IMG/VR virus record: IMGVR_UViG_3300033153_015063
Span: 1 to 64,000 of that record
Reading direction: 5' to 3' (one strand)
Length of the DNA stretch: 64,000 nucleotides
Below are positions 2,537-38,326 of the stretch, one piece after another. The notes under the pieces are model-generated. The model did no database searches, was not told where the DNA came from, and saw nothing but the letters and a program-made list of their open reading frames with translations. Position numbers and translations under genes: made by a program. Each line of letters starts with the position of its first letter. Positions within the stretch are counted from its first letter, which is position 1.

Positions 2537-3520
2537 TCAGAAATCCAACACGTTATGGCCCTCGGATTCCAGCCTGGCCTCGGCTATCTCAAAGGCACCA
2601 TATCCATCATTGGTGTTCTCCCCGATCTCACTTTCGAACCCGATGTATTTTCTACCCAGGCGATGAGCTGCAATAGCCGTTGTCCCAGAACCAATGAAAG
2701 GGTCCAATACCACATCGCCAAGCCTACTTCCGATGGTGATAAGGTAGGACATCAACTTGATGGGTTTGACTGAGATATGGGTGTTCTTGACCTTCTTTTT
2801 TCTACCTTCCTGTTCTTTGGCCTCGTAGCCCACATTACACCCACAGTTGTAATCCTTTCTTTTTCCGCATTCCACACAGAATAGATTATGAGAGTAGTAG
2901 TCACGATTCCTGGTCTCCGCTATTTGTTCAGTGACGCAGGACCCCTCTCTTTCGAAGTTCTCCAGGCCTTTTTCCTTTTCACTACGTGATGGTTTAGGAA
3001 CGATGAGAAAAGGAAAAGTTCTTTGAATGCTATCGGGTAATTGGTCGATAAGTTTTTCCCACCACCTATCGAGAGAAAAGAACATCGAGTAGTCACCTTC
3101 GTCGCCATAACCCCCCATCTGGAAGTCATCATAACCCCATTTTCCCGCTTTCTCATCTTTTGGTCTGGTTGTTTTACCGCCATCAGATTTCCTGATACAC
3201 CCATCATCAAGTACGTTGTCAGATACCAGTAGGTTCGGGGCAAAGCGACCTCTTGGGTCCACTACTGCATCATCCATCGACTTGTAACCATACTCAGCGG
3301 AACCAGTACCGATACGCCGGCCCTCGACGTTGTGCCGGCCACCGACGGATGGTTCCTCGGTCTCTCCATAGGGTATTTTTCCATCGTCCAACCAACAACA
3401 TCCAGTCCCTTGTTTGCAGAAATGAGCAATAGGTGGTTTTCTGAATTTACCATTAGGCAATCTTTCAACTTCCACCTCGATGCCATTATAATCTATTTCG
3501 TAGATTTTCTTTTCTTCCAT
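2537..3520 (-). CDS. Split N4/N6 DNA methyltransferase, C-terminal part
   Basis: HISVKP, DPFIGSGTT motif I; continues the alignment with intact paralogue 35816-37084 from KQGTG. Confidence 0.85.
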   Translation of the reverse strand: MEEKKIYEIDYNGIEVEVERLPNGKFRKPPIAHFCKQGTGCCWLDDGKIPYGETEEPSVGGRHNVEGRRIGTGSAEYGYKSMDDAVVDPRGRFAPNLLVSDNVLDDGCIRKSDGGKTTRPKDEKAGKWGYDDFQMGGYGDEGDYSMFFSLDRWWEKLIDQLPDSIQRTFPFLIVPKPSRSEKEKGLENFEREGSCVTEQIAETRNRDYYSHNLFCVECGKRKDYNCGCNVGYEAKEQEGRKKKVKNTHISVKPIKLMSYLITIGSRLGDVVLDPFIGSGTTAIAAHRLGRKYIGFESEIGENTNDGYGAFEIAEARLESEGHNVLDF

Positions 3521-4391
3521 CCTTCTTCCCTCAGTACCATCTTAATAGGAAACACAGAACAATTAAAATGAGAAGCACATTCTTTTACAGTTTTGTTTTT
3601 AACTATATAAAGTTCAAATAATGTCTTTTTATTGATATTGACTATTCTTTTATTAGATATATTAAACTTTCTCATATTTCTTTCTACAGTCGATGTTGAA
3701 CAACCAAAATATATTGAGGTTTCTTTTACAGTGTGTGTCGAGAGGAAATTTCTTAGTCCGTTTTCTTTTATGTTATATTTGAAGTTCGGGTTCAGTTTAC
3801 CTTTTCTTGCTTTAGCTTTCCGACTAATCTTCTTTCTCACATCAGGTCGTTTTGATGGATTTTTATCTCCTTTTATCCTCCCTTTTAATGTCTTACTTCT
3901 TTTTTTGTTGATTTCCTTTGGTTGCTTCTTTCCCCACATATAATGCTTTTCACCACTACATTTCTCTTCCATAGCTCTCTTATGTATCTGACGAACTATC
4001 TCATTTTCCATTGGATTGATATCTCCTCCTAAAGTCATATTGTAACCATTACCATTTCCTATAAACGTATCATATTCCTCAATAAAACTAACTTCCATAT
4101 TTCTTAATTCCTCGATAGATTCTGATTCATAAAGAGTAGTATATGTAAAGTTCTCTATCCCATATTCCTTTATCTTTTTATCTATTAATAGAGTAGGATT
4201 GGTATAACCTGATATTTTTTTATGTTCTTTCCATCTTTTATCCAACCCTCTACTATCAATACCAATATACATTTTATTATTTAGAGTATTTGTTATACAG
4301 TACACTACTCCCATTCTACATCAACTCCATATTTCTTTTCTATATCGAGTTTGATTTCCTCTAATATTCTTTCCTCTTCCCTTAATCTAGA
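3416..4391 (-). mobile_element. 976-bp homing-endonuclease insertion splitting a methyltransferase
   Basis: Removing it joins TYVDQAL to KQGTGCCWLDDGKI, which aligns without gaps to TFVENALKWGVAGLNIDGARI of the paralogue. Confidence 0.75.
3493..4314 (-). CDS. GIY-YIG homing endonuclease with NUMOD3-like and HTH repeats
   Basis: GVVYCITNTLNNKMYIG, R and E catalytic positions, GYNMT; AT-rich relative to flanks. Confidence 0.9.
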   Translation of the reverse strand: MGVVYCITNTLNNKMYIGIDSRGLDKRWKEHKKISGYTNPTLLIDKKIKEYGIENFTYTTLYESESIEELRNMEVSFIEEYDTFIGNGNGYNMTLGGDINPMENEIVRQIHKRAMEEKCSGEKHYMWGKKQPKEINKKRSKTLKGRIKGDKNPSKRPDVRKKISRKAKARKGKLNPNFKYNIKENGLRNFLSTHTVKETSIYFGCSTSTVERNMRKFNISNKRIVNINKKTLFELYIVKNKTVKECASHFNCSVFPIKMVLREEGWKKRKSTK

Positions 4392-5006
4392 TAGTGCCTG
4401 GTCCACATAGGTTTTTTCACTCAGTGGAACCATCGCCACTATGATGACCTCAACTGCTGGCTTAGGATTATAGCCTCCATAGGACCCTTCCATCGCCTTT
4501 GCCTCTTCTGTGGATGGTGCTGTTATATCACCCGCATCTCCTGTGCCACCAGTAGAACCACCATCACATCTCTTTGAGAATACAGCAGTATCTCTGGAAT
4601 AATTATATTGTTTGTGATGTGAACGACCTACTACTTCTCTCTCGACGCCAGCCCGTTCGTCAATCTTCTTCGAGATGTTTGGTGCCTTAGGCCACCCTGT
4701 AGCATAGGTCCAGTAGATGCTACTATTGGAAACCACAAATCCAGCGTCGTGGAGGTTGAGTATCATCTTTGCAAGGACATCTTGACGAGGCGATGACATC
4801 ACAAAGGCGAAGGACCCTGGTTTTAGGACCCGTAGACATTCCCTCCAGATTTCGACAGGCGGGACCCCTCGGTCCCAGTTTCGACCCATAAACGATAATC
4901 CATAAGGTGGATCTGTGATGATGGTATCAATGCAATTATCAGGAAGATGCACAGGCATACCAACCAGGCAATCCTCGTTGTAGATGATGTCGGTTTTGAA
5001 ATCCAT
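4305..5006 (-). CDS. Split N4/N6 DNA methyltransferase, N-terminal part
   Basis: MDFKTDIIYNEDC, TDPPY motif IV; start moved to 5006 to fit upstream TATA. Confidence 0.85.
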   Translation of the reverse strand: MDFKTDIIYNEDCLVGMPVHLPDNCIDTIITDPPYGLSFMGRNWDRGVPPVEIWRECLRVLKPGSFAFVMSSPRQDVLAKMILNLHDAGFVVSNSSIYWTYATGWPKAPNISKKIDERAGVEREVVGRSHHKQYNYSRDTAVFSKRCDGGSTGGTGDAGDITAPSTEEAKAMEGSYGGYNPKPAVEVIIVAMVPLSEKTYVDQALSRLREEERILEEIKLDIEKKYGVDVEWE

Positions 5007-5046
5007 ATGAAAGATACACACTAGATGGAGTTTAAAAAGATTCTTA

Positions 5047-5772
5047 TCAAATTTTCCTGAACACCATAAAGTGATGAAACCCACGTAGTAGGAATTTATT
5101 CTTTGTAGCACGATAGTGCCAGAGACCACCGGTCCCGGCCTGGTTCCTGACAGTGACAGAGATGTATTCGACTGGTTCAAAGTCTCGTTCAAGGAATAAT
5201 TGGTAGATACGCCAGCCTGCCGGTATGAACCTACCCTTTTTACTCTCATCCCCAATAAGCCAACCGACTGGCCCGCCACTCTTCAGGACTCTGTGAATCT
5301 CATCAATGACCTCCGCCATCGCCTCGAAGAAAGCATCGTCAGAGACAGGTATTTTACCTATATCTTCAGGATTATCTCCATAGTCGATGTTATCTCCATA
5401 AGGTGAATCGCAGAACACGGCGTCTATTGAATCCTCATTGAACACCTCACTGAGATTCCTAGCGTCGCAGAGTTCAATGTCGTCTCGATGCACATGCACA
5501 TCTGACCCAACAGCCTCTCGATCCATCATTTCAGCGACGTCGATGGTTGTTCCAGACCCACAAAATGGGTCGAGAACCAGATCACCTGGTTGGGTCCAGA
5601 GATGTAGGAAGTTCCAGATTACCCTGGCGGGTGTAACACCCCGGTATTTGTTATCACCACCTTTCACCTGCTTGTCACTCTGGGTCGGAAAATCCCAGAG
5701 AGTAGTGGTCTCTGGTTGGACCCCAACTCTCTTAACAAGTTCTTCTGGTAGATCATCCTCGAAGAAACTCAT
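5047..5772 (-). CDS. DNA methyltransferase (motif I before motif IV)
   Basis: DPFCGSGTT then DSPY, HRVLKSGG. Confidence 0.85.
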   Translation of the reverse strand: MSFFEDDLPEELVKRVGVQPETTTLWDFPTQSDKQVKGGDNKYRGVTPARVIWNFLHLWTQPGDLVLDPFCGSGTTIDVAEMMDREAVGSDVHVHRDDIELCDARNLSEVFNEDSIDAVFCDSPYGDNIDYGDNPEDIGKIPVSDDAFFEAMAEVIDEIHRVLKSGGPVGWLIGDESKKGRFIPAGWRIYQLFLERDFEPVEYISVTVRNQAGTGGLWHYRATKNKFLLRGFHHFMVFRKI

Positions 5773-5775
5773 ATA

Positions 5776-11759: not shown

Positions 11760-13721
11760 TTACACTTCCACCTCAGCTTCGAGTGCGTGTAAGAAGATAA
11801 AATCACGGCGGTGGCTCGGGTCCGTACCCATCAACTCCTCGAAAGCATTGGCCGTTGCCTCTTCATCCTCTATCTTGACCTGTATCAGAGTTCTACTATC
11901 AGGGTCCATCGTGGTTTCCCATAACTGGTCTGAGTTCATCTCACCCAGACCTTTGTATCGTTGAATCTCCATCTTACCAGTCCTGGTCAGCATCTTCTCA
12001 ACTACCTGTTCCTTCTCTTCCTCATTTATAACGTAGACAACTGAACGGCCCTTCGTTATTTTGTAGAGTGGAGGGCAAGCAACGAACACATGACCCTCTC
12101 TTATAAGAGTTGGGAGATATCTGAAAAAGAAGGTTAGTATAAGTATCTGGATATGGGCCCCATCTTCATCAGCATCACACATTATTATTATACGATTATA
12201 TCTGAGGTCATCATAATTGAAAATGCCAGTCAACTCGATCCCTGTCCCTATTACAGAAATCATCGACTGTATTTCACGGTTCTTCAGCACCTGACCCACG
12301 TCTACCTTCTCGACATTCCGCACTTTTCCTCGAAGAGGAAGAATTGCCTGTGTACGTCTGTCACGACCCTGTTTTGCCGTCCCACCGGCCGAGTTACCCT
12401 CTACTATGAACAACTCACACTCATCAGTATTCCGTGATGAACATGGTACGAACGATCCCTGGCTTTTCGGTAAGCCTCGCCTCTTACCTTTAGTTGCTTC
12501 TCTGGCCCTCTTGGCAGCCTCACGGGCCTTCCTCGAAGTGATTGCCCTTTCCACTATCAGCTTCGACTCTCGGATGTTTTTATCCAACCACTTCGACAGG
12601 TGCTCAGATACGACGTTATCAACTATTTTTCTGACCTCGGCGTTACCCAATCTGTACTTGGTCTGACCCATGAACTCTGGCTCAGGGACCTTCAAGGATA
12701 TTATTGATACGAGACCTTCTCTCACGTCTTCACCGCTGAGGGAACCATTCTTGTTGAGTCCGTGCTTCTCCGAGAATGAATTGATGGTCCTGGTGAAAGC
12801 AGACCTGAACCCCGCTGCGTGGGTTCCGCCTTCGATGGTTGGGATATTGTTGACGAAGGAAAGGAAGGTCTCACCATCGGCATAAGTATAGTAGAAGCCA
12901 ATCTCCACCAGCACTTCATCCCTGGTCTGGGAAATATACTCTGGTTTGTGGTGAATGGCACTCTTGTTACCTTTCAATTTCAAAACATAATCTTTCAAAC
13001 CACCTTTATGATGGTAGATAACCTCGTCCTCGTCGAGGTAGGTAAAGATGATAGCCAGACCGGGATTGAGATACGCCAGTTCATCACAGCGTTTTGAAAT
13101 CCTCTCCTCTGAAAATTTCCTAGGCCCGAACATCGTCTGGTCTGGCCTGAACCTGATAAGAGTTCCGGTCCCTCTCACCGGAACCTCCGTCAACTCCCTG
13201 GGTATCGAAGCATCCGTTAATTTCTTCGTGGTCGATTTGGTTAACGACAGCCGTGAAATTGGGGCATTAGCAACCCCCCGGGTGTATGACACCATCCAGA
13301 GCTTGTTTTGACGCCATACGTATGCTTCCAGGGTATCAGACAGGGCATTGGTCACCGACACCCCAACACCATGTAACCCACCAGAGACCTTGTAAGCACA
13401 CTTGTCAAACTTACCACCAGCATAGAGTGAGGTAAGAACCACCTCCAGGGCACTGGAACCACCGAACCTGGGGTCAGGATGCTTTCCAGTGGGGATACCC
13501 CTACCATTATCCTTGATGCTGACAAATCCACCTTTTTCAACGACTATGTTTATCTGGTCACAATAACCTGCGAGTGCCTCATCAATCGAGTTGTCGAGTA
13601 CCTCCCACAGCAGACGATGGAAACCACCTTCACCAACGTCATCAATGAACATGGCCGGACGTTTTCTGACTGCGTCAATACCATCAAGAGCTACGATGTC
13701 TTTGGCAGTATAACTTCCCAT
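11760..13721 (-). CDS. gyrB: Type IIA topoisomerase / DNA gyrase subunit B
   Basis: VRKRPAMF, EVLDNSIDE, DNGRGIP, SGGLHGVG, EGNSAGG, PLRGK, DADEDG, RYKGLGEM. Confidence 0.95.
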   Translation of the reverse strand: MGSYTAKDIVALDGIDAVRKRPAMFIDDVGEGGFHRLLWEVLDNSIDEALAGYCDQINIVVEKGGFVSIKDNGRGIPTGKHPDPRFGGSSALEVVLTSLYAGGKFDKCAYKVSGGLHGVGVSVTNALSDTLEAYVWRQNKLWMVSYTRGVANAPISRLSLTKSTTKKLTDASIPRELTEVPVRGTGTLIRFRPDQTMFGPRKFSEERISKRCDELAYLNPGLAIIFTYLDEDEVIYHHKGGLKDYVLKLKGNKSAIHHKPEYISQTRDEVLVEIGFYYTYADGETFLSFVNNIPTIEGGTHAAGFRSAFTRTINSFSEKHGLNKNGSLSGEDVREGLVSIISLKVPEPEFMGQTKYRLGNAEVRKIVDNVVSEHLSKWLDKNIRESKLIVERAITSRKAREAAKRAREATKGKRRGLPKSQGSFVPCSSRNTDECELFIVEGNSAGGTAKQGRDRRTQAILPLRGKVRNVEKVDVGQVLKNREIQSMISVIGTGIELTGIFNYDDLRYNRIIIMCDADEDGAHIQILILTFFFRYLPTLIREGHVFVACPPLYKITKGRSVVYVINEEEKEQVVEKMLTRTGKMEIQRYKGLGEMNSDQLWETTMDPDSRTLIQVKIEDEEATANAFEELMGTDPSHRRDFIFLHALEAEVEV

Positions 13722-13726
13722 CCGTT

Positions 13727-13984
13727 TTACTCCTTTTTGATGATTACAACGGAATGGATACTATCATCAACTTTAATCTTCATTGTAGATAACACATCTT
13801 TGATATCGTTCTGGAGAGTTGCCAGGTCACAGTTCGGTGTATGACCTGGTACCAATCTGTGACACATTGGGCACATGTTATGGAACTCTCCGCTGCACCA
13901 CTGAAGATTCTCGAACAGCATCTCGAAGCAACGCTTTAGTAATGGTGTCGTTCTACCCAGAGTGGATACAGCATCCTCTATCAT
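13727..13984 (-). CDS. Hypothetical protein
   Basis: ORF between promoter box and gyrB. Confidence 0.5.
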   Translation of the reverse strand: MIEDAVSTLGRTTPLLKRCFEMLFENLQWCSGEFHNMCPMCHRLVPGHTPNCDLATLQNDIKDVLSTMKIKVDDSIHSVVIIKKE

Positions 13985-14060
13985 ACAAAGAAGATAGTAG
14001 AACGTGTTTAAAAAGAAGATGGTGAGAAAAAAGGGTTGGGGGTGGTGTATGTAGTTATTT

Positions 14061-14993
14061 TCAATCCCGGGGGTCAGGAGTGTTGTCGGCGGTCCAGGGA
14101 GTCAGGTCCTCGACCCACCCCTTCGGGACATAGGTGCTGAAGAACCCAACCTCGTCGGAGTACTTCTCCAGTTGGGTCATTGCCTCCCGCTCGTCCTTGG
14201 CGGTCACTCCGACCCGGGCCCCGCAGATAGGTCCGATTCCAGTGATGACAGAGACCGGGTTGGTCAATGTCCTACCACAGATGTGACAAAGGGAATGGGG
14301 GGTTGTGTCGAATCGGGCGGTCACTTTGTACGCCTTCCCCGACTTACTCTCGGAGAGCTTGTAGACCTTCCACCGCCGCATAACAACCCGCTCCTCGTCC
14401 CATCCCAGGTCGTCCACGAAGCACCGTTGCTTCTTTTTCATGCCATACTTCGTCAGTGTGAGGATGTGGGTCGGGTCGGTCCCGGGGTCGGCGGTCTGGT
14501 AAGTGAACTTACCCTGGCCCTGGTTCTTCTGGGCATGTTCCTTCTCCTGCTTCTTGTTCTGGTTCCGCCGCCACTGGACTGCACCCTCGTCCTCGTTGCA
14601 GTACCAGATGGCTTTGCCGACATGGGACTTGAAGGGCTTACCATCCTTGTCGGTGTGTTCGACCTTACAGAACCCGCCCGACTTTCCGCAACGGTTCGGA
14701 CAGCGGAGACAGGGTTCCTTCACGTAGTCGGGAGTGGGCATCTCATCGAGCTTCTTATCGGCATAGAACCTGTTGGCCTTCGGACAGGCACCGTTGTCAG
14801 CAAGATGGCGGCTGGTGTCAGGGTCGATGGTGTCTCCACCCCGGACAGCATCAGCAAGGAAAGTTTTGAAGATTCGGCAGTAGTTACCCTTTCCACCCCG
14901 GCTGGGACACTCCTTACAGGGGGCAGGGGCACTCTCTGGGGCAGGGGGCACTGATCTGGGGGCACTTGTCAAATGATATCCATATCCCATCAT
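14061..14993 (-). CDS. Cys-rich protein with DUF6011-like domain
   Basis: CHICGRTLTNPVSVITGIGPIC; AGGTGAT RBS. Confidence 0.65.
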   Translation of the reverse strand: MMGYGYHLTSAPRSVPPAPESAPAPCKECPSRGGKGNYCRIFKTFLADAVRGGDTIDPDTSRHLADNGACPKANRFYADKKLDEMPTPDYVKEPCLRCPNRCGKSGGFCKVEHTDKDGKPFKSHVGKAIWYCNEDEGAVQWRRNQNKKQEKEHAQKNQGQGKFTYQTADPGTDPTHILTLTKYGMKKKQRCFVDDLGWDEERVVMRRWKVYKLSESKSGKAYKVTARFDTTPHSLCHICGRTLTNPVSVITGIGPICGARVGVTAKDEREAMTQLEKYSDEVGFFSTYVPKGWVEDLTPWTADNTPDPRD

Positions 14994-15120: not shown

Positions 15121-15714
15121 ATGACCGTCGTCGAAATCCCTCCAGGTTCAGGGAATAGATACCGCTATGAATATGAAGAGGGAGCTACGGTTTACAAAGG
15201 CCCGGTCGGCACGGCCCCGGAGCTTTCGGAGGGGGAGTTCCTGGAGATGTCCCAGGTTGTTGGCCAGAAAGAACGAAAACTCAAGACAGCCTTCGAGATA
15301 CTGGACCTCGATGAACAAAACCGTTACGATACTGGTCTTGGGGATGTTGATTATGATGTGATGAGTGACCCACCACAGATAGCACTCTGGATGGGAATCG
15401 ACAACCCCCTATCAGATTTCGAGGAGGAAGGATATCATAGTGGTGAATATGAAGTGAGCCAGAGGGACCAGGACAAGATGGGTAAATACTTCGAGGAGAA
15501 CTACAAGGGCATCTCCTTCGACCCATCTCATCTCAACAAACAGTACATCTCTGTGTGGTTCACCATCGAACCGACGATGCCCCCAGATACCAAAAATGAA
15601 GATAAACTCCGGGAATGGTTTGATGGAGAAATGAATAGGGCTTTCCAAGACACCGGGGCCAACAGTTTCAGGAATGATTTTCTCATCTACGGAGAAAAAT
15701 TAGAGTTCGACTAA
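15121..15714 (+). CDS. VEIPPGSG-module protein, copy 2 (acidic unknown cargo)
   Basis: N-terminal module; TTTAAATAC promoter identical to that of copy 12. Confidence 0.85.
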   Translation: MTVVEIPPGSGNRYRYEYEEGATVYKGPVGTAPELSEGEFLEMSQVVGQKERKLKTAFEILDLDEQNRYDTGLGDVDYDVMSDPPQIALWMGIDNPLSDFEEEGYHSGEYEVSQRDQDKMGKYFEENYKGISFDPSHLNKQYISVWFTIEPTMPPDTKNEDKLREWFDGEMNRAFQDTGANSFRNDFLIYGEKLEFD

Positions 15715-23402: not shown

Positions 23403-23403
23403 G

Positions 23404-24770: not shown

Positions 24771-25018
24771 GTTGCATTTTTCTATCAATTATAATCATCA
24801 GTGAAACTGACGAGAACCCCCTTATCAACTTCGGTTATAATGTTGCATTTTTCTATCAATTATAATCATCAGTGAAACGTTACGGACCTTTGTGCTAAAG
24901 AGGTTAAGGTCATTGTTGCATTTTTCTATCAATCATAATCCTCAGTGAAGCCCTCAGTATGTAGGGTGAGCTCAAGAAGGCTGGAGTGGTTGTATTTTTC
25001 TATCAATCGTAATCATCA
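24771..25018 (-). CRISPR. Satellite CRISPR array B: 4 repeats (one degenerate), 3 spacers
   Basis: 37-bp repeat at 24771, 24842, 24915, degenerate at 24989; spacers 34, 36, 37 bp. Confidence 0.9.
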
Positions 25019-25927
25019 AAAGTCCAGAACGCTGGTGTTTTTATCTGTTTCTTTGCTTATTAGATTTTTCCAGTCTTCAGGATTTTTCAGGAACGACCTA
25101 AAATCCAGACCTTCGAGTAGACCAAAGAACTGGTCGAAGTCGGGCTCGCCCTGGTCTGGGATGGTAATACCCTGCTGTTCGGGGTACTCAGGAACCAGTG
25201 GAAGAGTAATGAGCTCGATGTTCCGTTTGATGAGCTCGATGTTATCAGGTTCATTGACCCGGGCCATCACCCCTTTCAATCCATCAAACGGTAGTGCTTT
25301 GACGCTGATAACCTTCTTAGCTATCTTAATGGCCCTCTTCTTCCCAATACCATTGACACCATCAATGTTATCAGATGGGTCCCCCATCATCGCCTTCATA
25401 AAAAGGAACTGTTCTTTTATATCTCTATACTCATCCGGGTAGTCTTTGAAGTCGTCGATGGTGAAGGGTTCTTTCCCCCTTGGGTTCCAGATGGTAATAA
25501 CATCGTCCACGAGCTGACGGAAATCCCTATCTGATGATACAATGACAATATTATCCTCAATCTTATCACAATACATATCTGTCATAATTGCTATGACATC
25601 GTCAGCTTCAACATCAGGATACCGGAGGTGAGGAATACCCAGGGCGTCGAGAATCCTGGTGAATATCTCAATCTGAGCATAAAAGGTTTTTTCCATGTCA
25701 ACGGATCGGTTGGCCCTGCTACTGGTTTTTTTGTAAGTAGGGTGTATCTCCAACCTACGCTTACTGATACCACCATCAAACACATAAACAACATCATGTC
25801 CAGGGAATTTAGTGATGGTGTTACGGAACATAGCCAGCATCGAGAAGACGGTCCCGTTGGTGAGTTTTTGGCCCATCGTACTGTGGGCCATCCAGGCCTG
25901 GTTATTACCATCAAAGATGATTACCAT
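25016..25927 (-). CDS. 5'-3' exonuclease / flap endonuclease (Pol I N-domain type)
   Basis: FDGNN, VFDGG, YK, EADDVIA, SSDRDF, GDPSDNIDGVNGIGKKRA. Confidence 0.9.
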   Translation of the reverse strand: MVIIFDGNNQAWMAHSTMGQKLTNGTVFSMLAMFRNTITKFPGHDVVYVFDGGISKRRLEIHPTYKKTSSRANRSVDMEKTFYAQIEIFTRILDALGIPHLRYPDVEADDVIAIMTDMYCDKIEDNIVIVSSDRDFRQLVDDVITIWNPRGKEPFTIDDFKDYPDEYRDIKEQFLFMKAMMGDPSDNIDGVNGIGKKRAIKIAKKVISVKALPFDGLKGVMARVNEPDNIELIKRNIELITLPLVPEYPEQQGITIPDQGEPDFDQFFGLLEGLDFRSFLKNPEDWKNLISKETDKNTSVLDF

Positions 25928-25963: not shown

Positions 25964-26464
25964 CTATCGTTTTTTATCTATTCGTCGGCGTGTCAAGCTT
26001 CTCGGTTTCAGGTCGGGTTCAAGTTCCCTGATAAGCACGTTCATCCTTTTCCCCTTCTCGGTGAGACCGCCCTGCCACACCCAATACCGCTCACCGCCAT
26101 GCGGGAACCTTCCTTCATCGGATTCCCAATCTACGAGTCCGTGCCGATACAGAACTGCCAACGTCCTGACGTTGAACAACTGCTGGTCGGTGGTCCCTAT
26201 TGTATGGATTGGTGCATTCGGATGAAGAGTCGAGAGCATGAGGACCCCTTCTTTCTGTGCATTCGAGAGTTTTCTGTATGTCTGGCGTAATTGTACGTCA
26301 AGCACGTCGATCCCCTTTATATCGTCACCAATCATCCCCTTCAAGAACTCCTCCTCCGAAAGCTCAGGTGCTTCTCCCACAGGCCCCTTGTAGACCGTAG
26401 ATCCACCTTCGTACTCGTACCTGTATTTATTCCCTGAACCCTCAGGTATCTCTACAGTGGTCAT
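25964..26464 (-). CDS. VEIPPGSG-module protein, copy 6
   Basis: MTTVEIPEGSGNKYRYEYEGG; CGAACTCTTTAAATAC promoter. Confidence 0.85.
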   Translation of the reverse strand: MTTVEIPEGSGNKYRYEYEGGSTVYKGPVGEAPELSEEEFLKGMIGDDIKGIDVLDVQLRQTYRKLSNAQKEGVLMLSTLHPNAPIHTIGTTDQQLFNVRTLAVLYRHGLVDWESDEGRFPHGGERYWVWQGGLTEKGKRMNVLIRELEPDLKPRSLTRRRIDKKR

Positions 26465-26622
26465 TGGAGAGTGATAGGGCCGGAGAGTATTTAAAGAGTT
26501 CGGGAGGTTTATTACCACCGTCATCATCTATTGACCGCCACCGAAGTCAATCATACCAGTCAATGAAGGCACTATACACTTCCTCTCCATCTTCCTTTTT
26601 CATCAAAGTTAGACCACTTTGT

Positions 26623-28444: not shown

Positions 28445-30166
28445 CTACTTTTTCACTCTATGTAGGGTCCCTTTCGCCTTTTTTAGGAGCTCAGTTGTCT
28501 GCTTCAACCTCTCCGTTCTGTTCTTAACTCTGTCGCTCATAATAAGGTCACGGTTTTCAACCAACACCCCGGCGAAATGAGCTGCGTTGGTAGCTGCGTT
28601 CCGGTCAGCGTTGAGTTGGCGGCCGCAGTCACCACATCTGAACCATGAGTGCCAGTGTTCCCAGAAGACGCCAGATTTCCCTACATCTCCATGTTTACCC
28701 CACCCACCACACACTGAACACCGTTTGCAAGCCAGCGTCAAAGGAATCTTCTGGATAACGATGTTGGGAATCTCTCTCAGCTTATATGTGAGTTGCCAAT
28801 CTACGATATGGAAAGGCCACCTATTGGCCATCCTCCTGATAAAGTCCGGTAGGAGTTCCTCCTCGCAACCTACCATGTTTTCCAATCTACCAGCTTTGTC
28901 CCTACTTCCGGTGAAATCGTGGATGCAGACCAGGATGTTCCCGCCGAGTTCTTTGAGTTTGTTGGCAATCATCCTGGTTGCGTTGTGTAGCTCGTGCCTT
29001 AGAACCAACGACGCTTTTGTGAGATAAATAGATGCCTTCTTATACTTGATAGAAAGGTTCTTTTTTGTTATCGGGCGTTGATCTTTTCCACGACGGGTTG
29101 CCTTGGATTGTCTTTCCGCATACTTATCGTCACTTGACTTCCAGTCACGAAGCATTTTCTTTCCTTTATGTATGTAATGAAACAACTCTCGGCCAGTTCT
29201 GGCATCCAACACAACCAACGACATTGGACGATAGATACCACCATGAACACCAACAATATAGTCTATTTCATCTTTTTTGTAATCATAAACGTCCACATCA
29301 ACGGATAGTGTGATGTGAAGCCACCACTTACCATCCTTTGGTATCAAAGTCCCTGAACCATGTTTCAGGATCGCTTCAAGTGTAAGCTCGCACCATCCCT
29401 CCTGATAGTGTTTCTTACCGAACTCTTTCAACACCCCGGATCGGTCCCTGATTTGTGATGACTCTACCTGGGCTGAAAAAATACCATTACGATTTATTAC
29501 TCCAACACTAAAGACAATCCCAAAATTATTACCGTTTTTCTTAATTTTGATGGACCTGTTATGCAGTTCAATAACATTATACTTTTCATAGCTTGGTCTG
29601 TTCTTGTTATTGACGGGTTTCCTTGGCCCTTTTTTGGTTGATGTTCTGTTCATAATCTCATCAACCAACTTTGTTTTAATATCTGGGATCTGTTTTCTGG
29701 CTATTTTAAGTAGGATTTTTCTATACTCTCCTATTTCCTTTTTGTATTTCTTATTTCCCTTTTTTCTGGGGTAAGCCGGTGGATTGGCTACTTGACTGGT
29801 CAACCATGGCCACCATAACTTATATTTGTTGAGTAGAACATAGCTATCGGTACGCCAGAGACGGCTTATCCAATTGGACAATGAGGAACGAAAGTTGGCC
29901 AGAACAACCGATACCTGTTCCTGAACAGTAGTTGATGAAAGTAGTGTGGTATTGATTTTCTGATCTTTATTAATTCCTTGAGAAAGACGTAGAATATGTG
30001 GCGGGAGTTTAGGAGACTTAGGAATCTTACTGCCTTTGTAGTAAGATGGTATCATAATTGATGCATAGTCAGCTACATCTCTGGCCTGCCCAAGGGCCAC
30101 AAACAGACGTTCAGAGTCCTCTTTCTTGAACGTCAATGGGACCTGGATTGTTCTGATTGATTTCAT
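28445..30166 (-). CDS. cas12: Type V Cas12f-like effector with non-canonical, probably inactive RuvC
   Basis: IRTIQVPL N-terminus, RuvC-I VGVHGG, RuvC-II CIHDF, Zn finger CSVC...CGDC, RuvC-III NADRNAA; array starts 2 nt after stop. Confidence 0.85.
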   Translation of the reverse strand: MKSIRTIQVPLTFKKEDSERLFVALGQARDVADYASIMIPSYYKGSKIPKSPKLPPHILRLSQGINKDQKINTTLLSSTTVQEQVSVVLANFRSSLSNWISRLWRTDSYVLLNKYKLWWPWLTSQVANPPAYPRKKGNKKYKKEIGEYRKILLKIARKQIPDIKTKLVDEIMNRTSTKKGPRKPVNNKNRPSYEKYNVIELHNRSIKIKKNGNNFGIVFSVGVINRNGIFSAQVESSQIRDRSGVLKEFGKKHYQEGWCELTLEAILKHGSGTLIPKDGKWWLHITLSVDVDVYDYKKDEIDYIVGVHGGIYRPMSLVVLDARTGRELFHYIHKGKKMLRDWKSSDDKYAERQSKATRRGKDQRPITKKNLSIKYKKASIYLTKASLVLRHELHNATRMIANKLKELGGNILVCIHDFTGSRDKAGRLENMVGCEEELLPDFIRRMANRWPFHIVDWQLTYKLREIPNIVIQKIPLTLACKRCSVCGGWGKHGDVGKSGVFWEHWHSWFRCGDCGRQLNADRNAATNAAHFAGVLVENRDLIMSDRVKNRTERLKQTTELLKKAKGTLHRVKK

Positions 30167-30179
30167 GTGACAGTAAGTG

Positions 30180-30420
30180 TGGGGGGCAAAAGCCCCCCTT
30201 GATAGATTTCGACCGCCCCGCACTTTTCCCCTAACTCCGAAGAGATTGGTGACTTATGTACAGTTGGATAGCAGTACTCTGGGCCCAAACTGATGCACAG
30301 CCTGGGGGAACATACAACAGTCCCTGTTACCGGCGGTACGCAACCCCGGATTTCCGGTCTGGGAATCGAACCCAGCCTGGTTGGCCCAATTGACAACCAG
30401 TTCCAACATCCGAACATCTG
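30180..30420 (-). ncRNA. Putative tracrRNA
   Basis: TATA at 30443-30450; hairpin CCAGGCUG-UGCAU-CAGUUUGG whose loop pairs with repeat AUGCA; UCUAUCAA (30199-30206) pairs with repeat UUGAUAGA; terminal GGGGGGC-UUUU-GCCCCCC hairpin. Confidence 0.75.
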
Positions 30421-30452
30421 GTACTTGATAGCGAGGAATGTGTTTATAAACA

Positions 30453-30749
30453 TTACGTGTCAACTCTCTCAACCGATACCTTCATTTTATAACCCTCGCC
30501 AGCATCCTCACTGACCTTTGAACCATAGGCAAAGCACATCTCAAGGAGGTCTTCATCAGGCCAGCAGAGTATGAACTTCTCATCTACGTTCTCCCACCAG
30601 GCCCAGTATGTGTCATCTACATCATGGTTTTCGGTCAATCGGTATTTTCCAATCTCACCAGAAGAAACCATCTCAACCTGGTGTTTGTAAAGGTAGAAGT
30701 GTCGAGGGCCCTTCTCAGTCTCAAGAGCAAACATCTCACTACTTCTCAT
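30453..30749 (-). CDS. Hypothetical protein
   Basis: Operon member. Confidence 0.5.
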   Translation of the reverse strand: MRSSEMFALETEKGPRHFYLYKHQVEMVSSGEIGKYRLTENHDVDDTYWAWWENVDEKFILCWPDEDLLEMCFAYGSKVSEDAGEGYKMKVSVERVDT

Positions 30750-32136: not shown

Positions 32137-32925
32137 CTAAAATTCCAGTACGTCATAGTTATTGAAGAACCTCTCAAAGTCAGGATTCACCTCATACCCG
32201 ATAGACCTACGGCCCATCCGTCGTGCAACTCTGGTTGTTGTGCCAGTCCCGAGAAAAGGGTCCATCACTACCTCGGTAAGATAGGAAAAGCCCCTGATGA
32301 TACGTATTGGGATCTCCTTTGGAAAAGGGGCAGGATGGTCACGGTTTCCACTTGGAGCTGGCTTTATCTTCCAGACCGAGCTCTTCTTTATCTCCACCCA
32401 CTGGTCCTTACTGAGCTTCGAGGCTTCCTTTATCTCGCCAGAGAGATGAGATAGGTCACGCTTCCCAGATTTCTCAAATTCAAGGATAAATTCATGCATG
32501 AAATTGATTGGAAGGGCCCCTGGATAGGGGTAAGATCCGATAGGAGACTGAACAGAATTGGCCTTCTCCCAGATGATCTCTCGCTTGAACGCAAACCCCA
32601 ACCCCACACAATCGTCGATGGTCCAGCCGACCAGATTGATGGAGTGGAACAATTGCTTATCAGAGGCCGGGACAGGCAGGTTCATCAGATTGACAAACAT
32701 CTTACGCCCAGGGGCAAGTACACGGAGGCACTCTTTCCATACGTCTCTCATTTTGAGACGCCATGAATCTGGATTGGTCGTGTTACCGAGGTCGTCTGGT
32801 AGATTTGAGTATTTCTTTGCGTTGTAGTATGGCGGGCTGGTCACCACGAGATGAACAGAACAATCATCCACCTCGGACATATCCCTCGAATCTCTGACGT
32901 GATAGATAGGCTCAAAAAACTCCAT
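32137..32925 (-). CDS. N4/N6 DNA methyltransferase (beta class)
   Basis: TSPPY, HPAPFP, DPFLGTGTT. Confidence 0.9.
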   Translation of the reverse strand: MEFFEPIYHVRDSRDMSEVDDCSVHLVVTSPPYYNAKKYSNLPDDLGNTTNPDSWRLKMRDVWKECLRVLAPGRKMFVNLMNLPVPASDKQLFHSINLVGWTIDDCVGLGFAFKREIIWEKANSVQSPIGSYPYPGALPINFMHEFILEFEKSGKRDLSHLSGEIKEASKLSKDQWVEIKKSSVWKIKPAPSGNRDHPAPFPKEIPIRIIRGFSYLTEVVMDPFLGTGTTTRVARRMGRRSIGYEVNPDFERFFNNYDVLEF

Positions 32926-33289
32926 CTGTCTCACTGTGATAATCACATTCCCGTGAACAATATTCATCATCGTCGTAACAGAGTTTGTTGCATCCATTCC
33001 CCTGACATCTACCAGTAGGTTCGAAATCTTCTTCTTCTGTATCTATGTAGTCGATGATTGGGCATAACCACTGGTTGGCAGTTGGGTCAACTATCTCGCC
33101 ATCTGGAGTAGTAAGCCACCAATGATCTTCCAGTAGTTTTGGTCGGGCGGCTAGGGTAACAAAACCACTACAGAGTCTGAGTTCAGGAAAGATATCGTTC
33201 ATCTCTATACAGAGTTCTTTACACCTGTTAATCTTTTTTTCAAGTGTCGTTTTCTCAATCCACTCTTCGTAGATAGGTGACAAACTCAT
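32912..33289 (-). CDS. Hypothetical protein
   Basis: C...HWW...DPT pattern; upstream promoter box. Confidence 0.5.
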   Translation of the reverse strand: MSLSPIYEEWIEKTTLEKKINRCKELCIEMNDIFPELRLCSGFVTLAARPKLLEDHWWLTTPDGEIVDPTANQWLCPIIDYIDTEEEDFEPTGRCQGNGCNKLCYDDDEYCSRECDYHSETDGVF

Positions 33290-33327: not shown

Positions 33328-33615
33328 TCAAAAATTCAACACCTCACCTCTTTTCTCTATCAATTCCACCAGAACGTCACCATGACACGGTTTTGGTTTA
33401 CACCAACACCCAAGCACCTTCCCTTCCAACTCACCAATACGAGATAAAAGTTCTGGTTTGTTATTGATATATCTACGATACATCTCGACAACCTCGGCCC
33501 TACTTCCATCCTTTCCAACTATGAAGGGATTTCCCCAGACACTCGGTCTTCCGATATAGATATCCCACTCTTCATCAAAAATATGTACCACTCTGGTTGT
33601 CATTTTGGTTCCCAT
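33328..33615 (-). CDS. DUF4326-family protein
   Basis: YIGRPSVWGNPF, LGCWCKPKPCHGDVL. Confidence 0.85.
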   Translation of the reverse strand: MGTKMTTRVVHIFDEEWDIYIGRPSVWGNPFIVGKDGSRAEVVEMYRRYINNKPELLSRIGELEGKVLGCWCKPKPCHGDVLVELIEKRGEVLNF

Positions 33616-33871: not shown

Positions 33872-34207
33872 TTACTTATTACTACCACTATTCAGACCGC
33901 CATTTTTAATATATATCATTGTATCGAATAGCCTGAAACCTATATCCTTGAAGAATAATGCCTGCCGAAAACTTGTTCCTGTTTCGCTACCATCTACAGT
34001 GGCGTCACCCACGACCCAGACAACCACGCCGCCCTTTTTTGTTACTCGAAACAGTTCTTCTGCTACGTTCTTAAAGTCGAAGTTGTAGCCATCATACTCT
34101 CTGAGGTCATCGTATGGTGGACTTGTCACGGTCAGATCCACAAAGTTATCTGGCATACCCGCCATTGTAATCAAGCAGTCTTCATTGTATATCATATTCA
34201 TTTCCAT
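33872..34207 (-). pseudogene. Truncated DNA methyltransferase (N-half only)
   Basis: IYNEDC, TSPPY, stops after DTMIYIK; no motif I follows. Confidence 0.7.
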
Positions 34208-34691
34208 CTTCTTTCTCCAGATTTTCCAGTAGCTTTTCTGCATCCTTCTTCAATCGGTCCAATTCCTCCAGAACCTCATCACGTAGTGAACCATCATTGT
34301 TACGGACCTTTCCACCACGCCTCAGACAAGCCCAGTTACGTCGGAGGTCCTCTCTCTTTGACCAGACCCGCCATCTCAACGCTTTGTACCCTTCCCAAAA
34401 CATAGTGGCGTTCGACGGCCTGTAGTTGTTGTTCATTTTGGGCGGCCTATAGTAGAACTCTTCAAGGTCATAGATGTTTGAGTAGTAGAGAAGCGTCTGA
34501 ACGGAATGGGGGACCTTCATGGCCGTATGGTACTCCCATCCATTTGCTTCCATCAGATACTTGGTCTCTGATGCACAACAGAATCCTGTGGTCATCAGCT
34601 CGTAGACCAACAACCGTGCTGCGGCCTCGTTGGCACCAATGTTGTTCCGCCTGCCGCCCCCTGTTCCCTTTTGCTGTCCTGAAGTCAACAT
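34182..34691 (-). CDS. Hypothetical protein
   Basis: TATA about 30 nt upstream. Confidence 0.5.
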   Translation of the reverse strand: MLTSGQQKGTGGGRRNNIGANEAAARLLVYELMTTGFCCASETKYLMEANGWEYHTAMKVPHSVQTLLYYSNIYDLEEFYYRPPKMNNNYRPSNATMFWEGYKALRWRVWSKREDLRRNWACLRRGGKVRNNDGSLRDEVLEELDRLKKDAEKLLENLEKEDGNEYDIQ

Positions 34692-35815: not shown

Positions 35816-37084
35816 TCAGAAATCCATCACATCGCTTTTTACCATGATACTACCATCTTCGTCTATAGGAACCATTTCGCCTATCCTTTTCATAGCAATG
35901 TCATAGTAACGTTTTTCCCTCTCAAAACCAATATAATCCCTACCACATCTGGCTGCTGCGATAGCTGTAGTGCCCGACCCCATGAATGGGTCCAGGATGA
36001 TACCTCCACTTGGAGTTGCTGTGAGTCTGCAAAGATATTCTATCAACTCCAATGGTTTTACAGTTTCATGGTCGTTGTACTCACATCGTTCTGACCTCGA
36101 TGCTTTAGCACAGTAAAAAAATCTTGAAGGTCGGTCATCATTACCAACCTCATTGTCCAATAAATTACCTACATCCTCATCCAATATGAGATTGGCCGGA
36201 TAACGCCCTTTTGGATTATGGCGTTCCTCACCTAGATTTCGTGGTGGGGTCTTACCTTTACCCCATATCCCAGCACCAGGGACACTGGTCCTCCGTTCGC
36301 TATCTAGAACCTTACTCTCTATCCTCGCACCGTCGATGTTCAATCCGGCCACACCCCATTTCAAAGCATTCTCAACAAAGGTTCCATCGAGAGGTTTCAT
36401 AGCAACGAGGATGGTTTCCCATGCTGGTTTGAGTGAACTCCTCCAACCATCCCATATCTTTGCCTCCTCAGTCGCTGGAGTGGTAATATTGATCTCTCGT
36501 CTGCCAGCTTTCCAACCACCAGGAGCTTCATAGCCGCCATCCTTCTGGTTGATAAATATCCTTGCTCGCTTTTCATCGACACCAACGACCTCCCTCTCGG
36601 CTCCGGCGGCCTTGTCAATTCCCTTCGAGATATCGGTTCCCTTACCCCAACCCGACCCATACAACCACATCATTGTATCTCTAATTATCCATCCAGCATC
36701 CTCGATGGCACAGGCCAACCGATGCCAAGTTCTGGTACCAGAAAAAGCGAGAAAGAAAGCTCCTGGTTTTGCTACTCTTAAAGCCTCTACGGACCACTTA
36801 TAGTGCCACTCGTAAAGTTTTTGCATTTGTTTAATATGATTATGAGAACCGCCAAATTTTGGTGATGGTAAGTGCCTCGGCCATTTAATTCGCCTTTCTC
36901 CTATACCTGGTTTTTGAAATGGCTGAACGTCGCCTTCTTTCCAAGGCGAGTCCCACTCTGACATAAACGATAATCCATAAGGTGGATCTGTGATGATGGT
37001 ATCAATGCAATTATCAGGAAGATGCACAGGCATACCAACCAGGCAATCCTCGTTGTAGATGATGTCGGTTTCAATCTCGTCCAT
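35816..37084 (-). CDS. N4/N6 DNA methyltransferase (intact paralogue of split gene)
   Basis: TDPPY, GRYPAN, HETVKP, DPFMGSGTT. Confidence 0.9.
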   Translation of the reverse strand: MDEIETDIIYNEDCLVGMPVHLPDNCIDTIITDPPYGLSFMSEWDSPWKEGDVQPFQKPGIGERRIKWPRHLPSPKFGGSHNHIKQMQKLYEWHYKWSVEALRVAKPGAFFLAFSGTRTWHRLACAIEDAGWIIRDTMMWLYGSGWGKGTDISKGIDKAAGAEREVVGVDEKRARIFINQKDGGYEAPGGWKAGRREINITTPATEEAKIWDGWRSSLKPAWETILVAMKPLDGTFVENALKWGVAGLNIDGARIESKVLDSERRTSVPGAGIWGKGKTPPRNLGEERHNPKGRYPANLILDEDVGNLLDNEVGNDDRPSRFFYCAKASRSERCEYNDHETVKPLELIEYLCRLTATPSGGIILDPFMGSGTTAIAAARCGRDYIGFEREKRYYDIAMKRIGEMVPIDEDGSIMVKSDVMDF

Positions 37085-37096
37085 CTCGTTTCACCC

Positions 37097-38326
37097 TCAG
37101 AAATCCATCACGCTACTATCTCTCAACAAACCTTCGGTCTCGGCCCTGTCTATAGCCATCCTCACGTACTTCTCTGAAGTATCGCACCCCAACCAATCCC
37201 TACCCTCCTGGGTAGATACAACGGCTGTGGTCCCACTTCCCATGAAAGGGTCGAGAACGACACCGTCCGATGGGCAACATGCCTTGATGATTGGCCTGAT
37301 GAGCTCCTGTGGAAACACGGCATGATGGGCCTGCTTGAAGGGTTTGGTATTCTGTAAGATTGATACCACCCCATTCTCATCGTCCAATGCCCCATACTTC
37401 CCCATGTCATATCTGGCAGTAGATAACTCGTGTAGTAGTGTCTCCAGATTCTCTATGATGACGTCAATGGAATCTGAGTACCAGTCAATGGTTCTACGGT
37501 AGTGCCCCTGTTCTCTGATTGCTTCCCGATCATAGTAGTAGGATTCCTGCTTCGTGAGTACAAGGAAATATTCGTGTGCGATAGTAGGGCGATCCTTGGC
37601 GGATTCTGGCCGGATATTCCATTTCAACCATGGTACGACGGCCCGCCAATACCACCCAGCAGCCTGGAGAGACATTGCCAGACGCCAGGGGATACCAACC
37701 AAATCCTTCGGTTTTACACCCTCTGGGACCCTCACGGACATCCAGTTACCAACGTCCCCTACCTTCCCATCGACCTGTCCCCATGTCCTGTTTGCAGCGT
37801 ATGTATCACCGATATTCAGCCACAGAGACCCGGTGTCTTTGAGTACCCGCCAGTATTTCCCGAACACTGACGTCAGGTTGGAAACGTAGATGTTGGGTTC
37901 TGGTTCCAGACCAAGATGCCCCTTCCAAGCATCACACCATTTACAGTAGTATGACGTATATCCCTCGCCTCTGATGACACTCTCGCTCATCACCCGGTTC
38001 GCACCTACAGAAGAAGGTCGGTCAGGGTGGTTTTTACCACCCCTCGCAGGTGTAAAATGTTCCATCCACTCATGGGTACATTCATAGGGTTCCAAATCGT
38101 AACATTCTTTGTTCTGGGGATGGTAACAAAGTAACTCTTCACCATCACTGACCTGTTTACATTGCGGGCATCTCCGAAACCTTTTCCCACCCCACACCTC
38201 GGCTTTACCTAGATACTCTCTCAACATCCAGAATGGTGGTGATGTGACTATCAGGTCTACTATCCCATCTGGTAGAGTGTCGGCATACTCCATCGTATTC
38301 GATAAAGCGACTGTGTTGAGTGCCAC
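37097..38326 (-). CDS. N4/N6 DNA methyltransferase with Cys-rich insert
   Basis: TSPPF, HHAVFP, DPFMGSGTT; GTG start 30 nt after TTTATAAA. Confidence 0.88.
   Translation of the reverse strand: MALNTVALSNTMEYADTLPDGIVDLIVTSPPFWMLREYLGKAEVWGGKRFRRCPQCKQVSDGEELLCYHPQNKECYDLEPYECTHEWMEHFTPARGGKNHPDRPSSVGANRVMSESVIRGEGYTSYYCKWCDAWKGHLGLEPEPNIYVSNLTSVFGKYWRVLKDTGSLWLNIGDTYAANRTWGQVDGKVGDVGNWMSVRVPEGVKPKDLVGIPWRLAMSLQAAGWYWRAVVPWLKWNIRPESAKDRPTIAHEYFLVLTKQESYYYDREAIREQGHYRRTIDWYSDSIDVIIENLETLLHELSTARYDMGKYGALDDENGVVSILQNTKPFKQAHHAVFPQELIRPIIKACCPSDGVVLDPFMGSGTTAVVSTQEGRDWLGCDTSEKYVRMAIDRAETEGLLRDSSVMDF

Follow-up and report, generated by a model that had tools for sequence, protein, structure and literature searches.

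The stretch of DNA analysed here (the window) is the first 64 kb of a 242,596-bp record, an archaeal-type mobile element. It contains eight minus-strand ORFs whose products end in a similar short sequence closed by Phe, exactly as listed in the initial annotation. Pfam profile searches identified five of these as N6_N4 DNA methyltransferases, one as a PolI-type 5'-3' exonuclease (flap nuclease) and one as a DUF4326 protein, whereas the ORF at 22734 could not be assigned to any Pfam, PHROG or PADLOC family and yielded only a weak DUF559-like Atlas lead (0.83). Two overlapping ORFs at 4305–5772, with partial methyltransferase matches and no tail, are probably the upstream pieces of an interrupted methyltransferase cluster whose last piece is the ORF at 2537. 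Further carriers of the tail lie outside the window and include the RFC-type clamp-loader large subunit (RFC-L), the C-terminal piece of the family-B DNA polymerase (PolB) and five more methyltransferases, although one of these, at 184029, matches methyltransferase profiles only below their cut-offs.

Coordinates and C-termini of tail carriers and related ORFs in the 242,596-bp element (ORFs listed by a single position lie outside the window)
Position	Strand	Product	Length (aa)	C-terminus	Tail codons	Profile match or remark
2537–3520	−	N6_N4 DNA methyltransferase, C-terminal part	327	..GHNVLDF	2540–2551	PF01555, 9.6e-20 (profile positions 153–212 only)
4305–5772 (4305–5279 and 5047–5772)	−	Two overlapping ORFs, partial N6_N4 methyltransferase matches		no tail
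22734–23570	−	Unknown	278	..NQTSVLEF	22737–22748	Q at PIP position 1
25016–25927	−	PolI-type 5'-3' exonuclease (flap nuclease)	303	..NTSVLDF	25019–25030	PF02739, 5.4e-24; PF01367
26623–27498	−	N6_N4 DNA methyltransferase	291	..FDVAEDF		PF01555, 2.9e-42; weak variant that fits none of the patterns used
32137–32997	−	N6_N4 DNA methyltransferase	286	..NYDVLEF	32140–32151	PF01555, 5.3e-37
33328–33615	−	DUF4326 protein	95	..RGEVLNF	33331–33342	PF14216, 5e-27
33872–34243	−	N-terminal methyltransferase fragment	123	no tail		profile positions 1–92
35816–37084	−	N6_N4 DNA methyltransferase	422	..KSDVMDF	35819–35830	PF01555, 7.1e-33
37097–38386	−	N6_N4 DNA methyltransferase	429	..DSSVMDF	37100–37111	PF01555, 7.4e-38; in tandem with 35816–37084
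96266		Unknown, tail carrier
97021		Unknown, tail carrier
158409		Methyltransferase without a clean tail		..LPFSF
163310		Unknown, tail carrier
178067		Methyltransferase, tail carrier
179383		Methyltransferase, tail carrier
184029		Tail carrier				methyltransferase matches below cut-offs only
184588		Methyltransferase, tail carrier
189131–190474		RFC-L		..GGVFDF		phrog_11838, 2.9e-45; RFC lid
192106–192717		PolB, C-terminal piece		..DVMGY		phrog_262, profile positions 672–845
205213		Methyltransferase, tail carrier
241014		Methyltransferase without a clean tail		..AMRF

Enrichment and distribution of the C-terminal tail

To assess whether such C-termini could arise by chance, we counted them among the 308 non-overlapping ORFs of at least 60 aa in the element and compared the counts with shuffled expectations. 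Ten ORFs end in [VI][LM][DEN]F, against 0.02–0.03 expected, and 15 in [VIA][LMF][DENG][FY], against 0.14–0.17 expected. When L is also allowed at −3, 17 ORFs match, against 0.20–0.25 expected, the largest count in 2000 shuffles being only three. Of 724 discarded overlapping ORFs, by contrast, none matches the strict pattern and one the relaxed one. The carriers are not recent duplicates, since the methyltransferases share 25–42% identity, mostly local, and the other carriers share nothing detectable. Moreover, the tail codons vary synonymously and the DNA downstream is unrelated, and conservation is therefore at the protein level.

The annotated carriers are all DNA-acting enzymes, and no structural-type protein carries the tail. 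It is also absent from RFC-S, gyrase, topoisomerase IA, the helicases and TnpB, and four methyltransferase ORFs lack a clean version of it (those at 26623, 158409 and 241014, and the fragments at 4305–5772). The tail lies at the free C-terminus, beyond the catalytic domain and after a short, non-conserved linker. Homologues of the flap nuclease in bacterial phages align to residues 1–286 only, indicating that the tail is an added extension, while in the methyltransferase alignment the conserved domain ends at ..GYE[IV]N and is followed by a variable linker and then the tail.

Relationship to the archaeal PIP box

The initial annotation had proposed that these C-termini are clamp-binding tags akin to the PCNA-interacting (PIP) box, and four independent lines of evidence support this. 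The same tail ends the RFC-L, the C-terminal piece of PolB and the flap nuclease of the element, which are the classic clamp clients. Among the 106 full-length best homologues of the RFC-L, 24 end in h-h-x-[FWY]-COOH and 40 carry Qxxhxx[FWY] at the end (..QKTLFDF and similar), so that the tail occupies the position of the archaeal RFC-L PIP box. Archaeal RFC-L is known to carry a C-terminal PIP box, and archaeal PIP boxes usually lie at the extreme C-terminus, some without the second aromatic (PMC7776575; PMC3504372). Similarly, 14 of the 119 best homologues (55–57% identity) of the methyltransferase at 32137 end in h-h-x-F-COOH, mostly as ..QKLLVEF, and 13 of them have Q at PIP position 1; one is named Thermoplasmata archaeon and one lies on a cellular archaeal contig, while a GyrB control gave 0 of 119. 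Finally, the haloarchaeal tailed virus HCTV-1 (NC_021330), which encodes RFC-L, RFC-S and PolB with no PCNA_N match in its 103-kb genome, ends its RFC-L in ..SVLDF, its PolB in ..GVLSW and two further proteins in ..SVLEF and ..DVLDF. HCTV-1 nonetheless differs from the element in being a halophile-type virus with only four carriers and no N6_N4 methyltransferase at all, and protein identity between the two is 25–30%.

Consistent with an archaeal setting, TATA-like hexamers start at −30 to −28 from the start codon in 46 cases (the boxes sitting at about −27) and only seven of 54 such genes have a Shine–Dalgarno-like site, which is the archaeal leaderless pattern. PolB and RFC-L are, moreover, nearest to haloarchaeal virus proteins, and RFC-L has almost no close relatives among 1.8 billion representative proteins. 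Some genes are nonetheless of bacterial-phage type, namely the PolI-type exonuclease and a class II CCA enzyme. The element encodes both RFC-L and RFC-S, but six clamp profiles (PCNA_N, PCNA_C, TIGR00590, DnaN, and gp45 N-terminal and C-terminal; PF02916 and PF09116 for the gp45 family) found nothing in six frames, even at E = 10, although a very divergent element-encoded clamp cannot be excluded.

The tail, x-x-[small/polar]-[VIAL]-[LMF]-[DE]-F-COOH, is thus best read as a truncated PIP box comprising positions 4 to 7. As in the archaeal C-terminal type found on RFC-L, FEN1, PolB and RNase HII (QxxhxxFF/QxxLxxFx), it has an aliphatic residue at position 4 and an aromatic one at position 7. 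It differs, however, in that position 5 is itself hydrophobic (L/M/F) and position 8 is never present, every carrier ending at position 7; many RFC-L homologues also stop there, and an A. fulgidus RNase HII PIP box without the second aromatic is documented (PMC3504372). In addition, the conserved Gln at position 1 of the PIP consensus invoked in the initial annotation is mostly absent, with Q at −6 in only two of 17 carriers and N in three.

Possible coupling of methylation to replication

We infer, with a probability of roughly 0.7 and without direct evidence of binding, that the tails tether these enzymes to the hydrophobic pocket of an archaeal PCNA, most likely that of the as yet unidentified host, loaded by the RFC-L/RFC-S clamp loader of the element. 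By carrying the same tail as the polymerase, flap nuclease and clamp loader, at least ten divergent amino-methyltransferases would ride on clamps left on newly made DNA and methylate their sites during or directly after replication, thereby protecting the DNA of the element from restriction. DUF4326 and four unknown proteins carry the tail too. If the tails do bind PCNA, the element would illustrate a simple way for a mobile genome to have its DNA methylated at many different sites before host restriction enzymes can see it, would add methyltransferases, DUF4326 and several unknown proteins to the archaeal PCNA client list, and would bear on how little sequence a functional PIP box needs. DNA methyltransferases are not known archaeal PCNA clients, and full-text searches found no report of clamp-tethered DNA methyltransferases in archaea or their viruses. 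In eukaryotes, DNMT1 is recruited to the clamp through a PIP-type peptide so that nascent DNA is methylated (mentioned in PMC5264654), but the likeness is functional only: DNMT1 is a C5 cytosine methyltransferase with an internal N-terminal PIP box, whereas here no PF00145 was found in the genome, the carriers are N6/N4 amino-methyltransferases with C-terminal tails, there are ten or more of them in one element, and the likely purpose is escape from restriction rather than epigenetic inheritance.

Other explanations appear less likely. The tails could bind a clamp encoded by the element itself that is too divergent for current profiles, the mechanism being the same but the ring different. The presence of both RFC-L and RFC-S and the many unannotated ORFs of 200–300 aa would be in keeping with this, as would a survey relating replicase components to genome size in dsDNA viruses (PMC3201878), and large dsDNA viruses with a clamp loader usually seem to encode a clamp as well. 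Nevertheless, we consider it unlikely given the negative profile searches, the same combination of RFC and tails with no PCNA_N match in HCTV-1, and the cellular archaeal methyltransferase ending in ..QKLLGEF, which must use the PCNA of the cell. Less likely still is a tag for a different hub or process, such as a single-strand-binding protein, a protease or degron system, or sorting of proteins into the particle. Acidic C-terminal tails ending in Phe may mediate other replication contacts, as in T7 gp2.5 and gp4 and the bacterial SSB tail, and six carriers have no established function (DUF4326, the unknowns at 22734, 96266, 97021 and 163310, and the ORF at 184029), but this reading would not account for the positional equivalence to the RFC-L PIP box, for the full Q-x-x-L-x-x-F form in orthologous methyltransferases, or for the DNA-acting nature of the annotated carriers.

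That the element is a bacteriophage whose tails bind a bacterial beta clamp or a T4-type gp45 clamp is very doubtful. The flap nuclease, the CCA enzyme and the gyrase do resemble bacterial or phage proteins, and the RB69 polymerase appears to end in a similar h-h-D-F tail that docks onto the trimeric gp45 clamp. However, the h-h-x-F spacing does not fit the beta-clamp motif QL[SD]LF, no DnaN or gp45 profile matched, the clamp loader is of the two-AAA+-subunit RFC type, with a Rep_fac_C domain and nearest relatives in archaeal viruses, and the expression signals are of archaeal type. Chance, or descent from one duplicated C-terminal segment without a function of its own, might be suggested by most carriers belonging to one Pfam family, N6_N4_Mtase, but is effectively refuted by the shuffle and codon analyses, and seven carriers from unrelated families or with no family, plus one with only sub-threshold methyltransferase matches (RFC-L, PolB, FEN, DUF4326; the unknowns at 22734, 96266, 97021 and 163310; the ORF at 184029), share the tail.

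More tentatively, replication-coupled DNA methylation through clamp tethering may be a general prokaryotic and viral strategy that has gone unnoticed, with one enzyme family having swapped its tail to match the clamp of each host domain, and the many tails of the element might in addition compete with host clients for PCNA. In this regard, cellular archaeal orthologues carry a full PIP box (..QKLLVEF), whereas the bacterial members of the same methyltransferase family end in ..FQQKL[LI] or ..QPKLF, which looks like the beta-clamp motif.

Carriers of the tail and their enrichment

The initial annotation had listed eight proteins sharing a C-terminal V-[LM]-[DEN]-F tail, read as a clamp-binding-like tag, and we found that all eight ORFs lie on the minus strand and end exactly as it reported. 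Pfam identifies five of them as N6_N4 DNA methyltransferases, one as a PolI-type 5'-3' exonuclease and one as DUF4326, with no family for ORF 22734. The window is the first 64 kb of a 242,596-bp record that is catalogued as a complete virus with direct terminal repeats, and a survey of every C-terminus in the whole genome showed more carriers outside the window. Among 308 non-overlapping ORFs of at least 60 aa, 10 end in [VI][LM][DEN]F against 0.02–0.03 expected, 15 in [VIA][LMF][DENG][FY] against 0.14–0.17 expected, and 17 in [VIAL][LMF][DENG][FY] against 0.20–0.25 expected, the largest count in 2000 shuffles being 3. By contrast, the 724 rejected overlapping ORFs gave 0 matches to the strict pattern and 1 to the relaxed one. 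Phe is the second most common last residue in the genome.

An explanation of the tails as copies of one repeated DNA segment was rejected, since Val, Leu, Asp, Glu and Phe are each written with several codons and the DNA after the stop codons is unrelated. Moreover, the methyltransferases are only 25–42% identical to each other, mostly around motif I, and the other carriers share no detectable similarity. The conservation is therefore selected at the peptide level.

Besides the methyltransferases, the carriers include an RFC-type clamp-loader large subunit (RFC-L) and the C-terminal piece of a split family-B DNA polymerase (PolB), whereas the RFC small subunit (RFC-S) has no tail. Polymerase, flap nuclease and RFC large subunit, but not RFC small subunit, is the textbook client list of a sliding clamp. 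The genome holds about 15 methyltransferase ORFs, comprising 13 N6_N4 ORFs (15 profile matches) plus 179383–179976 and 184029–184583, the latter with Pfam matches below the cut-offs, and no C5 methyltransferase is present. Every full-length one ends in Phe, and ten fit the strict or relaxed pattern. Gyrase A and B, topoisomerase IA, three helicases, a PD-(D/E)XK nuclease, a TnpB-like protein, a hmdU kinase and all surface-type proteins lack the tail, as do a GmrSD_N-domain protein and a class II CCA-adding enzyme. Of the carriers without assigned function, 22734–23570 gave only a weak DUF559 lead in the Atlas (0.83) and an unusable AF2 model (pLDDT 35), and the Atlas gave nothing for 96266–97021.

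Features of the element and of the haloarchaeal virus HCTV-1 (L001–L009, stretches of the rest of the element's genome, in their own coordinates; L010, HCTV-1)
Location	Strand	Feature	C-terminus or remark
2537–3520	−	N6_N4 methyltransferase, profile positions 153–212 only	Carries the tail
3493–4314		ORF starting MGVVYCITN	GIY-YIG-like by eye only
4305–5279; 5047–5772		Partial methyltransferase matches	
22734–23570	−	No family	
25016	−	PolI-type 5'-3' exonuclease	
26623	−	N6_N4 methyltransferase	
32137–32997	−	N6_N4 methyltransferase	
33328	−	DUF4326	
35816	−	N6_N4 methyltransferase	
37097–38386	−	N6_N4 methyltransferase	
96266–97021; 97021–97269		Unknown	..RLFNF and ..RLFDF
163310–163942		Unknown	..ALGF
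178067–179155		Methyltransferase	..NVLEF
179383–179976		Methyltransferase (phrog_11619)	..SVMEF
184029–184583		Weak, sub-threshold matches to N6-methyltransferase profiles	..TILDF
184588–186234		Methyltransferase	..NALDF
189131–190474		RFC-L (phrog_11838, 2.9e-45; RFC lid, Rad17 and AAA Pfam hits)	..GGVFDF
192106–192717		PolB C-terminal piece, 203 aa (phrog_262, profile positions 672–845 of 856)	..DVMGY
192907–194946		PolB N-terminal piece, 679 aa	
192106–194946 (L007:8106–10946)		Split PolB, with a 63-aa ORF between the pieces	
205213–206040		Methyltransferase	..FVLGF
212634–213647		RFC-S, Rep_fac_C domain	No tail
213708–214448		246-aa ORF beside RFC-S	Member of the 37-ORF module family
15121–15714(+), 17151–17669(−), 19223–19840(−), 23998–24627(−), 25964–26527(−), 39126–39851(−), 46195–46815(−), 51596–52075(+), 53294–54109(+), 54186–55247(+), 56338–57057(−), 57502–57930(−), 61006–61437(−)	as given	Window members of the 37-ORF module family	24 more in L001–L009
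Starts at 1890(−), 14993(−), 31991(−), 44026(−), 46145(−), 49677(−), 54186(+), 55324(+), 57057(−), 57457(−), 57930(−), 60355(−)	as given	Examples of window genes with promoter-like boxes	
28445–30223(−), 46845–47801(−), 11760–13721(−), 57977–60355(−), 44115–46145(−), 51972–53297(+)	as given	TnpB/Cas12f-like protein (592 aa), GmrSD_N-domain protein, gyrase B and A, topoisomerase IA and class II CCA-adding enzyme	No tail
L007:3177–4241 and 13258–14241; L008:5190–7049; window 55324–56157		5-hmdU DNA kinase (PF18723, 3.7e-48), PEP-utiliser domain protein, 619-aa thymidylate-synthase-like protein; window ORF PPDK-like by eye only	
L009:9909–11597; L001–L002 (68–95 kb)		HerA/AAA_10-like ATPase; large PKD and thrombospondin-repeat proteins	
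L010 (NC_021330): 29541–30704, 12442–12918, 19319–19816, 16281–16577		DUF6610 protein, small winged-helix protein, acetyltransferase-like protein and HNH protein of HCTV-1	..SDVLDF, ..ESVLEF, ..DPLDF and ..DPLDY

Correspondence to the archaeal PIP box

To find what the tail corresponds to, we ran a full HMMER search with RFC-L against 1.84 billion representative proteins, which gave 3196 hits, only one of them closer than 30% identity. Of the 106 full-length proteins among the best 151, 24 end in h-h-x-[FWY]-COOH and 40 carry Qxxhxx[FWY] at the end, for example ..QKTLFDF, ..QKSLFDF and ..QKSLLEF, with one ending ..KQATLFDFLKK, which appears to be the Pyrococcus-type RFC-L PIP box. Published reviews state that archaeal RFC large subunits carry a C-terminal PIP box, that archaeal PIP boxes usually sit at the extreme C-terminus and that some lack the second aromatic (PMC7776575; PMC3504372). 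The C-terminus of the element's RFC-L therefore aligns as PIP positions 1–7 with the chain ending at position 7, and the shared tail is positions 4–7 of a PIP box.

A second, independent line of evidence comes from methyltransferase 32137–32997. Fourteen of its 119 best homologues, 55–57% identical to it and one of them named Thermoplasmata archaeon, end in h-h-x-F-COOH, and 13 of these have Q at position 1, mostly as ..QKLLVEF or ..QKLLIEF, whereas none of 119 GyrB homologues does. In the alignment, the conserved domain ends at ..GYE[IV]N and is followed by a variable linker and then the tail. One of these proteins, P0158, lies on cellular contigs of up to 260 kb, with archaeal-type genes (CarS-like, MJ0043_C) and a PD-(D/E)XK gene as neighbours. 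In contrast, the HTH-fused members among homologues P0166–P0272, some of them named as bacterial, end in ..NFQQKL, ..FQQKL[LI] or ..QPKLF, and 37 of 119 end in Qxx[LM][FLIM]-COOH, which resembles the beta-clamp-binding motif; the tail may be matched to the clamp of each host domain.

A third line is provided by HCTV-1, the best database match to the element's RFC-L. Its RFC-L ends in ..SQSVLDF and its PolB in ..GGVLSW, and the same tail sits on its DUF6610 and small winged-helix proteins. These last two, together with the acetyltransferase-like and HNH proteins, are unannotated candidate PCNA clients in a cultured virus, in whose 103 kb no PCNA_N match and no N6_N4 methyltransferase were found.

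Candidate clamp and proposed mechanism

No DnaN, PCNA (N-terminal, C-terminal or full-length) or gp45 (N- or C-terminal) profile (PF00712, PF00705, PF02747, TIGR00590, PF02916 and PF09116) matched the element in six frames, even at E = 10, and Pfam, PHROG and PDB-sequence scans of about 30 ORFs next to the replication genes revealed no clamp; the ORF adjacent to RFC-S belongs instead to a family described below (AF2 model unusable, pLDDT 36). The setting looks archaeal. TTTAWA or TATAWA hexamers pile up with their first base at −30 to −28 from the start codon, with 46 cases in three positions against about one per position elsewhere, and are often preceded by a purine-rich GAAA(C), as a BRE would be. 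Two promoter-like classes, GAAAC-TATATAAAG and CT(C/T)TTTAAA(C/T), each lie at a fixed −30 to −23 from the start codon, and only 7 of the 54 genes with such a hexamer have a Shine-Dalgarno-like site, the pattern of leaderless archaeal transcripts. Moreover, PolB and RFC-L are nearest to haloarchaeal virus proteins, at 25–30% identity. The proteome is not halophilic (6.6% Lys, median pI of 5.7). The host appears to be an archaeon but is not identified, and we therefore favour host PCNA loaded by the element's own RFC, with a hidden divergent clamp as the main rival.

Megablast of the window against phages found no match, a scan of IMG/VR with RFC-L found none, and a k-mer protein search found no close RFC-L homologue; the nearest RFC-L relative, P0004 (41% identity), lies on a 2.3-kb contig. 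GyrB homologues, 48–50% identical to diverse bacteria, were uninformative, and the one genome scan, with the TnpB-like ORF, gave a spurious Hungatella hit.

We propose that the free C-terminal V-[LM]-[DE]-F inserts into the hydrophobic pocket of PCNA, which would concentrate the methyltransferases on clamps at and behind the fork, so that the element's DNA becomes methylated at many specificities as it is made and is thereby protected from restriction, while the flap nuclease, polymerase and RFC-L would use the same docking site for replication itself. Insertion into the pocket remains an inference from sequence, as a single co-fold, without alignments, of the non-cognate A. fulgidus PCNA with residues 390–429 of methyltransferase 37097–38386 returned no verdict (score 0.01, partner pLDDT 33) and counts neither way.

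The clamp-binding reading of the initial annotation is supported: the tail has the spacing, extreme C-terminal position, linker and client set of a PIP box, but Gln at position 1 occurs in only 2 of 17 carriers and position 8 is never present. The tail is best called a truncated PIP-box variant, of the kind already seen at the ends of many RFC-L proteins. It is not the bacterial QL[SD]LF motif, because the spacing is wrong and no DnaN was detected, nor a T4 gp45 system, because no gp45 was detected and the loader is of RFC type. Functionally, the nearest analogue is DNMT1–PCNA in eukaryotes, although the enzymes here are amino-methyltransferases, number ten or more, and carry C-terminal tails. 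Full-text searches for PCNA-binding methyltransferases in archaea or archaeal viruses returned nothing relevant.

Other shared modules and genes of the element

Thirty-seven ORFs, more than 10% of the genes and 13 of them in the window, share a nearly identical module of about 45 aa, VEIPPGSGNRYRY..YKGPVG..EF, mostly at the N-terminus and followed by unrelated sequence. No Pfam, PHROG or Atlas family matches this second, even larger shared tag, for which a sorting, packaging or docking role is only a guess.

No hit was found with the virus hallmark profiles Terminase_6N and Phage_capsid (HK97 capsid), and there are instead a HerA/AAA_10-like ATPase and large PKD and thrombospondin-repeat proteins, so that the 243-kb record may be a virus or a plasmid-like element. 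The 5-hmdU DNA kinase in particular, encoded along with a PEP-utiliser domain protein and a thymidylate-synthase-like protein, suggests that the element may hypermodify thymidine in addition to methylating its DNA heavily. Lastly, the methyltransferase cluster at 2537–5772 looks interrupted, with two ORFs carrying partial methyltransferase matches separated from 2537–3520 by ORF 3493–4314, and a homing endonuclease insertion is possible.
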